A DNA stretch of 64,000 nucleotides from Octopus sinensis (Eukaryota), in the NCBI RefSeq assembly GCF_006345805.1, contig NC_043007.1, positions 67,580,001-67,644,000 of the forward strand. The letters run 5' to 3'. Both the position numbers and the translations under genes were made by a program. Shown here piece after piece: positions 27,801-30,800 of this stretch. The notes under the pieces were generated by a model. It did not search any database, had not been told where the DNA came from, and worked only from the letters and a program-made list of their open reading frames with translations. How positions within the stretch are numbered: the first letter of the stretch is position 1; each line of letters begins with the position of its first letter.

Positions 27801-30800
27801 TCCTCCTGCATCTTGCAGCTCACCTGTGATGGACCGGCATCCCATTCGGATGGGGAACCTATACGCCAAGGAAACCGGGAAACCAGCCCTTATGAGCCAG
27901 GCATGGCTTGAGAAGAAACAAAAAAAAAAAAAAATAAAGAGACAGTGACAAGGCAGCTGTGCTCTATTCCAAAAAAGGAGTCAGAAGAATGCTTCTATCA
28001 ATGGAAGCAACAATGGATAAAGTGTGTAGCTTCAGAAGAGGGACTACTTCAAAGAAGATTAAATGCCAAATTGATATGTGTTGTGGTTTTCTTTCCATGG
28101 CACCAATCCTGATATTTTCTGATCAGACCGCATGCGTGCATATGTGTGTTTGTGTCTCATTGTCTCAGCATTGCACAACATTTGTAAAACAAGCATTGCC
28201 GTCATACAAACAGTTGGTATACCAAAAACTTTAATGTTAGTTGTCTTAAATAAACAATAGCTGACTGAACTATAGTAGTGATTGATAGGGAAATATAAAA
28301 GCAGGTAGGATAGACAGACATACCAGTTGGTCTGTTTGTCTACCTGGACAGTCTGCAGAGAGCCACTGAAATGTAAATACTTACATCTGCCCTTTGTTTA
28401 GTATCCGACAATGCAATCACTTCATTTTGTAGCCGATCTGCAAGAGAAACGTATCACTTATAGGTCAAATAGATATATTAATTAGAGGTCAAATAGATAT
28501 CATATTACTTGACATGCTAGACAGATATTGTCATCCCACACAGCTGTTACAATAACTATTTTTTACTGCTACTAAGCATTTCTATAAAAAAATTAAAATG
28601 ATTACTGATCTATGTGCAAAGCCAGAATTTTGTGGGGAGGGGTAAGTTAATGAAATCGACTCCTGTACTTGATTAGTAATTTATTTTTTCAACCCTAGAA
28701 GGATGAAAGGTAGGTTTATCCTATTGAAGGATACTCTTAGGTTCAGATTTATATCACCCTTCACAACATAGATTGTGTGGTAGGCGTGACAATAAATCAG
28801 TTTGCCTTAGCAAAGTATGTTTAGTTATAAGCATCTACACATGATCCATGATCCCTTCTCTGTCCCTGCAAATACTGAGCTCCAGATATTCAGGGTAGAT
28901 ATCTGCATCAATCTGACCTGCTGATATTCAGGTTGGATATCACCTGTATTAATCTGACCAGCAGATGTTCAGGGTGGATATCATCTGTATCAATCTGATC
29001 TGTACTTGTTCAAGTTAGATATCATCTCTGGAACAATAAATTCTATAGATGTTCATCACCTGTATTAATCAAGCCAACTCCTTCTCCCATAACTTATAAT
29101 AATAAAAATATGATTTAATGACACAGCAAACTTACCATAATAGGTCTGTTTATCATGAGCCATTTGTTGGCCTTGTGTTTCTAATTGTTTAATCATTAGG
29201 TTGCCCAACTGTAAACATTTCCATGTACTGGAAAGAGACAGACATAATTAAACAAATAAATTTATGAATAAATAACAAAGAAGAAACAAGTGATATCAGA
29301 CATTATAAAATTCAATTTGAGAGAGACAAAAAAATAAAAAATAAAATAAAACCCAAACAAATCCAACAATAGGATTTGAACCATGTGTCTATCATTTACT
29401 GAGTAGCCAATTTATAAATGATAGGAGAGACAAATAATATGAGACAATTTGAGATAGGTAATGAAAAATAAATGACTAAATAAAAAGTTACAGTGACAGG
29501 ACCTGAACTATGTACCTGTCATTTACTGCATGGCAATGTTACTATGTTACACTTGAGTGTAACCACCAATCCTTCTCAGATTTAACAATTACAAATTGTT
29601 TCTACTATTTCAATTACAGTATGACTAATTGGAAAATTGTAAGTCCTGTTGATACAAGTGACATTTAATCTGAACATTTGCAGGTGAAATTGACCCAGAT
29701 TATATCCATCTTGAACATCTGCAAATTAATCTGATCCAGATGATATTGACTCTGAACATGTGCAAGTAAGGCTGATTCAGATGATATCCATCCTGAACAT
29801 CTGAAGCTCAGCATCTACAGAGACAGAGAAGGGACTGTAAATCATGTCTAGATGCTTGTGACCAAATATACTATTTTAATGGCATCTAAAGCTCACTATC
29901 AGAGTTAAACCGGATGTATTGTCAAGTCAACCACACAATGAATGTTGTCTTTGAATGAAATTGAATCCCTTCAGCTGGTGGTTGTATAAATCTGAGTCTA
30001 ACAGCATAATTCAATAGTATAACAAACTTTGCTTTTTATCCTTCTGGTGTTGACAAAATAAATTACCAGTCAAGCATTGGAGTTGATTTCATTAAGTCTT
30101 CCACCACACACACACACAAAAAGCTCAGTATGTCTTTCAGTATATGTTCTAGTTTTAAGGACTCTCAGTTCAAATCATACCAAGGTCAGTAAACATCCTG
30201 TTTTAAAACGACCTAAATTAAAACCTTCCAACAAAATTTCATATCAATTTAGGTTTCAAACACCAGTTAAATAATGACCAAGTTATTTTCTAAAGTCTTC
30301 ATTATTTTCAAAATTAACTGAAACAAAGAGATATGTGGTCTAGGCATGTCACCCGCTTATCAGGGATGGCCAAAACAATCCTTCAAAGAACAGACAAAGG
30401 TGGAGGCAGACAGAGAAAGAGGTGGGAAAACAATATCTGTGGGTGGAGACAGGTGAAGGAATCTAGTTGCAAAGTCATTGGTGGTGCTCCAACGGCCAGC
30501 CAGGCTACAGGATATGTAATGTAATGTAATGGTAAAAAAAGGGTTAAAGTTTGCTTCCCAACCATGGGGTCTTGAATTCAGTCCCACTGGCCAACATATT
30601 GGGCAAGTGTCTTCTACTATTTCTCTGGGTAGACTAAAGCTTTGGGAGTGATTTGGTAGATGGAAACTGAAAGAAGCTTGTCATATATATGTGTGTGTGT
30701 GTGTATGTTGCATTTGCTCCCCCATCCATCACTTAACAATTGGTATTAGTTTGTTTACATCCCCCATGACTTAGCAGTTTAGCTAAGACCAAAGAACTGA

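Follow-up and report, generated by a model that had tools for sequence, protein, structure and literature searches.

A 92-nt coding exon of a gene that we take to be PLEKHD1-like is enclosed by a pair of repeats in opposite orientation. We lean towards reading this pair as two diverged insertions of a composite sister element of the SINE-D family, which repeat accumulation left around the exon as a neutral by-product and not as a selected switch. The two arms (L and R; Table 1) would be old, diverged copies of one composite repeat, with ~320 nt of 41-bp units and non-SINE sequence in its 5' part and a SINE-D-like stretch in its last ~165 nt. Such a sister family, in which the 3' module alone is recognisable as SINE-D, would have inserted twice, leaving one copy in each of the two introns around the exon, in opposite orientation and with the tails pointing outward. 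The window, by which we mean the whole 64-kb stretch analysed here, holds 17 inverted repeat pairs with members within 5 kb of each other at E<1e-8. The pair around the exon is the strongest nearby inverted pair in it, and another pair brackets two PH exons. Inverted pairs around exons are common in repeat-rich introns, and the present one is an ordinary example of a known arrangement.

Table 1. Coordinates of the arms, their modules and the surrounding exons (window positions). The repeat's own sense strand is minus in the L arm and plus in the R arm.
Feature	Position	Strand	Basis or remark
L arm	28588..29075	-	alignment to R arm; SINE-D homology from ~28597; secure core 28631-29024
SINE-D-like 3' module of L, degenerate B-box region to 3' end	28597..28760	-	SINE-D alignment
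Non-SINE "unique" module of L	28761..28862	-	arm alignment
41-bp tandem units of L	28863..29072	-	~4 units to 29027 and a partial unit 29047-29072
R arm	29645..30150	+	alignment to L arm; secure core 29659-30112
SINE-D-like 3' module of R	29976..30150	+	SINE-D alignment; part replaced by (CA)n microsatellite 30105-30118
Non-SINE module of R	29812..29975	+	R-specific insertions ~29884-29907 and ~29949-29979
41-bp tandem units of R, ~4 units	29650..29811	+	repeat search, TRF
L half of the predicted 44-bp sense-strand helix, the longest without interruption, 7 G·U pairs	28851..28894	-	
R half of the 44-bp helix	29792..29835	-	
Upstream exon, 77 nt, end of PH domain, 25 residues then (V)	33394..33470	-	
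92-nt coding exon, phase 2 to 1	29136..29227	-	AG acceptor, GTAAGT donor; links PH domain to coiled coil
Rest of loop, 3' end of upstream intron, A/T-rich	29228..29644	-	
Downstream exon, 53 nt, (D) and 17 residues	28385..28437	-	

The two arms are joined as reverse complements by a single blastn alignment (L 28631-29024 versus R 30112-29659; 65.9% identity over 454 columns, E ~1e-48), and their similarity runs collinearly through SINE-D-like sequence, non-SINE sequence and 41-bp units, which reproduces the three sequence types described in an earlier note on this DNA. The repeat search recovered the pair as a collinear chain of inverted blocks: 28647-28708/30034-30095 (84%), 28716-28758/29980-30022 (79%), 28763-28803/29908-29948 (80%), 28807-28903/29783-29879 (78%) and 28913-29027/29697-29811 (75%). 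In a global alignment of the arms, 337 columns match, 113 are mismatched and 79 are gaps; the identity is 75% in the aligned columns and 64% when gaps are counted (64-66% when blastn is considered as well), and the ~70-75% estimated earlier was right. The limits given before, 28635-29075 and 29645-30105, hold in that the repeat pair is confirmed, but L is well aligned only to ~29027-29040, with nothing more than a partial 41-bp unit up to 29072. Outside the core, weak similarity may extend outward to ~28588 and ~30150. Both arms lie inside the PLEKHD1-like transcription unit, ~570-630 nt apart (the spacer between the arm cores is 634 nt). L fills ~70% of the 698-nt intron that follows the 92-nt exon in the transcript, and R lies in the 4.1-kb upstream intron, ~420 nt from the acceptor of that exon.

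The exon itself, its splice sites, its position in the loop and the frame produced by skipping it were all reproduced from the sequence. It encodes (V), 30 residues and (D). Its skipping would join ...CAGGT to ATCGGCTACAAAATGA, giving SQVSATK*, with the premature TGA lying in the 53-nt downstream exon. A Pfam match to the PH domain (PF00169, E 9.6e-11) ends at ...WVEMLRKSS, ahead of the 92-nt exon, and confirms that the exon follows the PH domain. The exons further downstream match, in the same order, the coiled coil of a PLEKHD1 probe of approximate sequence, and the PLEKHD1-like identity of the gene serves as a lead only. Zolotarov et al. list as PLEKHD1 orthologues LOC115217511, on NC_043007.1 near 67.56 Mb, and LOC106870835, loci to which the gene may correspond. 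A PDB search with the PH and coiled-coil peptide returned weak generic PH and coiled-coil matches and no PLEKHD1 structure. No homologue of the 74-aa peptide encoded by the three exons was matched in the collections searched, which seemingly do not cover this locus in cephalopods, and exact look-ups of four ORFs of the window, one of them a 468-aa reverse transcriptase, gave no match in protein collections.

What kind of element are the arms? Their outer ~165 nt align to the ~225-bp SINE-D family, which is represented at least 17 more times in the window, and the SINE-D body and 3' end are recognisable over ~151 alignment columns. The tRNA-like head of the family is absent: upstream of the B-box region the arms diverge from SINE-D, the A-box region is missing, and the B-box-like motif is split by a 6-nt insertion shared by both arms. 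Searches of the arms for a tRNA, 5S or 7SL head with ARAGORN and with Rfam, at the gathering threshold and at E up to 5, found none. Besides this insertion, the arms have in common letters that are absent from the SINE-D family, TTAATGAAATC versus TCGATTACATC and GTAATTTATTTT versus GTAC-TTATTTT, and the shared non-consensus letters reported in the earlier note are thus real. An A/T-rich remnant of a tail precedes the SINE-D homology of L, at 28585-28600, and is seen in L only; the tail of R is obscured by (CA)n. TRF calls the tandem units at 28875-29027 (~3.7 copies) and 29691-29803 (2.8 copies). The likeness to the tRNA-derived SINEs of octopus therefore covers the body and the 3' end, over ~125-165 nt, and the tail remnant of L, whereas the arms differ from SINE-D in lacking the A-box region, in their interrupted B box, in a different 5' half with 41-bp units and in having no recognisable target-site duplications.

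The pair had been interpreted before as an old local inverted duplication. We judge this less likely, and two insertions of a SINE-D-related composite retroposon most likely, given where the homology ends and how far each arm has diverged on its own. On both sides the outer end of the arm homology falls approximately at the SINE-like 3' terminus, and the flanks beyond are unrelated; a local duplication would be expected to have end-points unrelated to the termini of mobile elements. Over 151 SINE columns the arms share 33 derived sites and have 22 (L) and 34 (R) private ones, with a common ancestor ~22% off the SINE-D consensus. Their private divergence, 15-22%, lies within the 10-29% of ordinary SINE-D copies in the window. 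Boundaries at the SINE-D-like 3' end and private divergence like that of ordinary copies fit two insertions of a sister family. In Octopus vulgaris, SINEs reportedly make up 11.6% of the genome and ~900 SINE families have been recently active (PMC13282606), which makes a rare sister family plausible. On the divergence scale of the same study (JC 0.09 for ~25 My, JC 0.2 for ~56 My), the 75% identity of the arms (JC ~0.31 between them) would correspond, roughly, to an age of ~40 My, and species with a later split would be expected to have both arms.

Some observations argue against the two insertions. In the 64-kb window the ~320-nt non-SINE part was found in the arms only, both with an nhmmer profile of the two arms and with a fuzzy search for the 41-bp unit, and no target-site duplications stood out above controls, the best direct matches being 10 nt with 1 mismatch and no better than cross-arm controls. 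The lack of clear target-site duplications is nevertheless expected if the copies have decayed by ~15-20%. Furthermore, with no A-box, a broken B box and no Rfam or ARAGORN match in the arms, the transcription and mobilisation of such a family are unexplained. A 29-nt degenerate pattern for the best-conserved stretch of the arms had 0 matches in metagenomes, but so did a control motif of the abundant SINE-D, and this search is uninformative.

Alternatively, a 5'-truncated SINE-D and its genomic flank, including a 41-bp minisatellite, may have been copied once in inverted orientation across the exon, for example by template switching, and have decayed later. This alternative, which would have the same consequences at the RNA level, accounts for a non-SINE part of ~320 nt confined to the two arms within the window, for the lack of target-site duplications above controls and for the missing pol III head, as in a truncated SINE with its flank. 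It also suits the short distance between the arms, and template-switch-like events do occur at the locus, as shown by a small inverted copy (29954-29968 versus 30079-30093) within an R-specific insertion. Yet one of its end-points would have to coincide with the SINE 3' terminus, and the ancestral SINE would need to have decayed by ~22-28% ahead of the duplication and by another 15-22% since then. The implied 36-44% from the consensus is far older than the other SINE-D copies in the window. Inverted duplications across an intact exon are also much rarer than retroposon insertions. We thus regard a local duplication as the less likely origin and favour the insertion of two copies.

Whatever their origin, the arms are predicted to be complementary enough to pair with each other within the pre-mRNA, in a long and imperfect duplex with the exon and both of its splice sites in the loop. 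Folding, which the earlier note had proposed as a check, predicts a very stable duplex on the sense strand, in which 325 of the 574 MFE pairs are between arms; 63% of the bases in R are paired to L with a probability >0.5, and the arm-arm pairing predicted in the sense transcript amounts to ~320-355 bp. The region has an MFE of -538 kcal/mol versus -371 +/- 6.5 for dinucleotide shuffles (z = -26), and the cofold gain is -180 kcal/mol versus -10 +/- 3.4 with a shuffled arm. Flipping or shuffling one arm costs ~150-170 kcal/mol, and 317 arm-arm pairs persist when the region is folded in a 3.8-kb context. The prediction thus has the features expected of inverted Alu (IRAlu) pairs: a stable duplex in the transcribed strand between copies in opposite orientation less than ~2 kb apart.

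Could such a duplex have been kept by selection? It might then act as a dsRNA switch, with inclusion of the exon modulated through ADAR editing, temperature or RNA helicases, toggling between the complete protein and a product that is PH-only or a target of NMD. In favour of this reading, the duplex predicted around the frame-critical exon is very stable, and the end of the L arm lies ~60-100 nt from the donor, a range of distances over which Alus in introns had an effect on splicing in minigene tests (PMC2533698). The longest helix is also suggestive, with 44 bp in the sense orientation versus 21 bp in the antisense and 13 bp when only Watson-Crick pairs are allowed; its seven G·U-compatible transitions in a row would not be expected under neutrality. 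Its permutation P is 0.0002-0.007, but the statistic is post hoc and the longest helices of other inverted pairs in the window reach 33-38 bp. In addition, the segment 28814-28905 differs between arms by ~17 transitions to 2 transversions, versus ~1:1 elsewhere. We considered two other sources for these differences. CpG decay was rejected on inspection, the sites not being CpG, and retroposition of an ADAR-edited RNA was rejected since A/G and C/T differences are mixed on the repeat's sense strand. The 44-bp G·U-rich helix is the only hint of constraint, and one found post hoc.

Other evidence speaks against a switch. Wobble-compatible substitutions between the arms have no overall strand bias (27 sense versus 31 antisense), such a bias being the global sign of selection on RNA pairing that was looked for. 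The arms differ by 79 gap columns and by several arm-specific insertions. The acceptor, with its long pyrimidine tract, and the GTAAGT donor both look strong, and the exon looks constitutive. For octopus, most editing is reported from introns or 3' UTRs, with splice sites seldom altered, and splicing diversity was described as unremarkable (PMC9699675). We therefore consider a selected switch very unlikely, and are equally sceptical of its narrower form, in which the G·U-tolerant helix of 44 bp, and perhaps more of the duplex, would be a selected clamp sensitive to ADAR, helicases or temperature that sets the skipping of the exon. If this clamp existed, the output of PLEKHD1 would be tuned by nonsense-mediated decay or by a PH-only product, and cephalopods would have a repeat-derived, structure-based splicing rheostat.

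The same architecture invites another reading, in which the complementary arms would drive back-splicing of the 92-nt exon into a circRNA. The classic signature of such loci is a set of reverse-complementary matches between the two introns around the exon, and the predicted duplex is strong. Known circRNA biogenesis likewise relies on complementary intronic sequences on both sides, but differs in that here a lone 92-nt exon is enclosed. Exons that circularise singly exceed the average length ~3-fold, and longer exons circularise more efficiently (reviewed in PMC6376182); with its 92 nt the exon is short, which makes single-exon back-splicing unfavourable. The levels of circRNAs are moreover reported to be low overall in octopus (PMC9699675). 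We find this reading barely credible.

Among known systems, the closest parallel to the two-insertion reading is given by the IRAlu pairs of primate introns, which are also SINE-related copies in opposite orientation, in one pre-mRNA, a few hundred nucleotides apart and near an exon (PMC2533698, PMC5625713). Such pairs are substrates of ADAR hyper-editing, and constitutive exons next to them can become alternative (Lev-Maor et al. 2008, PMC2533698; Porath et al. 2017, PMC5625713). As with them, a long imperfect duplex is predicted for the octopus arms, whose 75% identity exceeds the 65% used as dsRNA criterion by Porath et al. (PMC5625713). The octopus arms differ in being composite, with SINE sequence only in the 3' ~165 nt and a remainder that has no other copy in the window, and in bracketing the exon from two introns, whereas in the RABL5 case both Alus are upstream (PMC2533698). 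Their divergence is also far greater than that of the "nearly perfect" duplexes behind most hyper-editing. Across animals, inverted repeat pairs account for most hyper-editing, with octopus at the top (PMC5625713). If the arms behave as inverted Alus do, one may expect promiscuous hyper-editing of the arms by ADAR, with the 44-bp helix as the best target. By the same analogy, skipping of the exon would be low at most and would yield the frameshifted SQVSATK* transcript, subject to nonsense-mediated decay. The exon-complementary and intronic editing-site complementary structures at recoding sites of cephalopods and insects offer a further comparison, since they too place dsRNA within a pre-mRNA and close to a coding exon; heavy editing is presumed for the lineage of the present locus as well. 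In contrast to them, the octopus duplex is intron-intron and excludes the exon, and hence cannot direct the recoding of the 92-nt exon.

If the arms result from mere repeat accumulation, the locus adds one to the many intronic inverted-repeat dsRNAs that presumably feed hyper-editing by ADAR in repeat-rich genomes. It would then be of use as a clean, well-delimited test locus that combines a strong predicted duplex with a single short, frame-critical exon inside the loop and a clearly defined skip product. If instead the arms were conserved and the skip regulated, the dosage of a signalling-adaptor gene would be tied to a repeat-derived dsRNA, in a heavy-editing lineage where editing has so far been linked to recoding and not to splicing control. 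Finally, the loop between the arms has a repeat of its own, an internal direct one (29302-29414 and 29434-29541).

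The 92-nt exon at 29136-29227 lies between the two arms of an inverted repeat, which we call L (core 28631-29024) and R (core 29659-30112). Our repeat search of the window returned five inverted blocks forming one collinear chain (see the table), and a single blastn alignment unites them (28631-29024 versus 30112-29659, 65.9% over 454 columns, E ~1e-48), which confirms the inverted repeat at the position reported in the earlier note. Aligned globally, L and R match at 337 columns, mismatch at 113 and are gapped at 79, i.e., an identity of 75% over aligned columns and of 64% with gaps. 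TRF found tandem units of 41 bp in L (28875-29027) and in R (29691-29803). The most plausible interpretation of the structure is an old inverted pair related to SINE-D, a tRNA-derived SINE family with many copies in the window, flanking a constitutive-looking exon. Inverted repeat pairs around an exon are of a well-known kind.

Inverted blocks shared by the two arms, and long reverse-transcriptase ORFs in the window
Feature	Position	Strand	Identity
Inverted block	28647-28708/30034-30095		84%
Inverted block	28716-28758/29980-30022		79%
Inverted block	28763-28803/29908-29948		80%
Inverted block	28807-28903/29783-29879		78%
Inverted block	28913-29027/29697-29811		75%
Reverse-transcriptase ORF, LINE-like element	42065-43471	plus	
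Reverse-transcriptase ORF, LINE-like element	48059-48844	plus	
Reverse-transcriptase ORF, LINE-like element	49282-50322	plus	

The exon belongs to a PLEKHD1-like gene on the minus strand, with L in the downstream and R in the upstream intron; its AG acceptor follows an extended pyrimidine tract, and its donor is GTAAGT. A PLEKHD1 probe, used only to locate exons, is collinear with minus-strand exons between 44303 and 4008, whose splice sites are plausible. PLEKHD1 orthologues in two Octopus species are listed in the supplement of a published paper. The concatenated peptide matches the Pfam PH domain (PF00169, E 9.6e-11), which ends in ...WVEMLRKSS directly before the 92-nt exon; downstream of it the peptide gives only weak coiled-coil-type matches. 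Skipping the exon would join ...CAGGT to ATCGGCTACAAAATGA and yield SQVSATK*, the product predicted previously. At 28452-28499, a 24-nt sequence (TATCACTTATAGGTCAAATAGATA) stands twice in tandem. In the transcript, this duplication immediately precedes the 3' splice site of exon 28385-28437, where the branch point of this acceptor should be.

What are the arms made of? Aligned against at least 17 other SINE-D copies of the window, some in head-to-tail arrays, the ~165 outer nt of both arms are homologous to this ~225-bp family. On the SINE-D sense strand, an A-box-like and a B-box-like motif (GAGTTCAAATTCC) are followed by a body and an (ATT)n tail. Only the 3' portion of the family, starting at the B-box region, is present in the arms. 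An A/T-rich tail remnant has survived in L, and part of the SINE-like module of R was overwritten by a (CA)n microsatellite. In the repeat's own orientation, the 41-bp units are followed by a non-SINE stretch and then by the SINE-like 3' module. The sense strand of the repeat is the minus strand in L and the plus strand in R, and therefore both 5' ends face the exon. No tRNA-like or other known RNA head was detected in either arm. At 25644-25732, inside a SINE-D copy, a 29-nt segment (TATTTTGCTGATCCCAAAAGGATGAAAGG) is triplicated, showing that internal tandem expansion, as in the 41-bp units, occurs in such repeats. In the loop between the exon and R, 29302-29414 and 29434-29541 form an internal direct repeat (65%), each copy with a minus-strand B-box-like motif (GGTTCAAATCC and GTTCAGGTCC); a further tRNA-derived SINE is their probable source.

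The arms are best explained as old, oppositely oriented copies of a composite repeat related to SINE-D, probably generated by two insertions of a sister family. Their homology ends on both sides at about the SINE-like 3' terminus, beyond which the flanks are unrelated, and we count this for such insertions, as we do the some 900 recently active SINE families reported in O. vulgaris (PMC13282606). The earlier note proposed instead a local inverted duplication, which is possible but less likely. It would fit that the ~320-nt non-SINE part occurs in the 64-kb window only in the two arms, that no target-site duplications around the arms score above controls, that a promoter-bearing head is missing, and that an R-specific insertion contains a short inverted copy, which hints at template switching at the locus. 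Some derived letters and a 6-nt insertion are common to L and R and absent from every other SINE-D copy aligned. On the side of two insertions, the 151 SINE columns include 33 shared-derived sites, with 22 private differences in L and 34 in R, so that the common ancestor of the arms was already ~22-28% from the SINE-D consensus; private decay is 15-22% per arm, typical of the surrounding copies (10-29%). A decayed SINE-D copy duplicated later would need to be far older than every other copy in the window. Judging roughly from this indirect evidence, we moderately favor independent insertions. The R-specific insertion (29949-29979) carries AATGAAATTGAATCC, which repeats in inverted orientation the SINE-like motif that R itself has 110 nt away, at 30079-30093; this looks like a small template-switch event. 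Immediately outside R, 30191-30328 is a copy of another repeat family (also at 15974-16111, 51538-51663 and 61180-61265), which hides the original R flank.

Folding of the sense transcript (28560-30170) predicts a strong arm-arm duplex. The earlier note named the lack of a stable predicted duplex as a refutation of its dsRNA splicing/editing switch, and on this point the idea is not refuted. The MFE is -538 kcal/mol, with 325 of 574 pairs joining the arms, against an average of -371 +/- 6.5 for whole-sequence shuffles (native z = -26), -367 with L alone shuffled and -389 with L flipped. Of the R-arm bases, 63% have an ensemble probability of pairing with L of p>0.5. The cofolding gain relative to the separately folded arms is -180 kcal/mol, versus -10 +/- 3.4 with a shuffled arm, and 317 arm-arm pairs remain in a 3.8-kb context. 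The predicted duplex is imperfect, with uninterrupted runs of at most 14 bp apart from one helix of 44 bp.

Is the pairing under selection? In the L/R alignment, 27 transitions give G·U in the sense RNA and 31 only in the antisense RNA; hence, there is no overall sign of protected pairing on the transcribed strand. The arms also differ by many indels. The 44-bp sense-strand helix (29835-29792/28851-28894) owes its length to seven consecutive differences, each a transition compatible with G·U in the sense strand. The longest antisense-strand helix has 21 bp, and 13 bp is the maximum if only Watson-Crick pairs count. Permutation of difference labels or columns gives P values of 0.00015-0.007 in this post hoc test, and the surrounding segment has ~17 transitions to 2 transversions versus ~1:1 elsewhere. 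Helices of 33-38 bp occur in other inverted pairs of the window. We regard the helix as an unexplained hint, not as evidence of function, and a selected switch, drawing on this single post hoc hint, stays putative.

The L/R pair is the strongest of 17 inverted pairs within 5 kb (E<1e-8) in the window. In published surveys, inverted repeat pairs account for most hyper-editing and octopus comes first, with a near-perfect inverted partner at most 2 kb away for ~0.4% of random 50-bp loci (PMC5625713). Octopus editing is chiefly intronic or in 3' UTRs and seldom changes a splice site, and octopus shows few circRNAs and no unusual splicing diversity (PMC9699675). Inverted intronic Alus can turn a nearby exon alternative, an effect that varies strongly with how far they lie from it (PMC2533698). 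In our case, 60-100 nt separate the end of the L arm from the exon donor. Since single-exon circles favor long exons (PMC6376182), a 92-nt circle is unlikely. We predict that the duplex is likely edited by ADAR and that it would promote non-productive skipping weakly at most.

Other repeats were found in the window. A second inverted pair (32905-33012/37945-38052) brackets two PH-domain exons, 33394-33470 and about 37698-37775. It belongs to a different family (5 copies in the window), with 80% identity over 108 nt and a longest helix of 28 bp in sense versus 15 bp in antisense. SINE-D forms head-to-tail arrays at 53110-53940 and 61180-62245 (period 225-235 bp, TRF scores 542-683), one of which faces an inverted array (60077-60790) ~650 nt away, making a second large inverted repeat (~600 nt, ~60%). 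Retroposons such as SINEs do not usually stand in tandem, and these arrays suggest satellite-like amplification. The LINE-like ORFs, inside or upstream of the minus-strand gene, match RVT_1 (E 2e-29), behind which comes a zinc finger of PHD-like or C1-like type; 98-bp and 63-bp tandem repeats lie just 3' of the first ORF (43544-43900). Finally, 18955-19290 consists of two copies of a 169-bp unit (86%) with a clear tRNA-like head (GGTTCAGTCCCACTG), the mark of a different tRNA-derived SINE family, here as a dimer.
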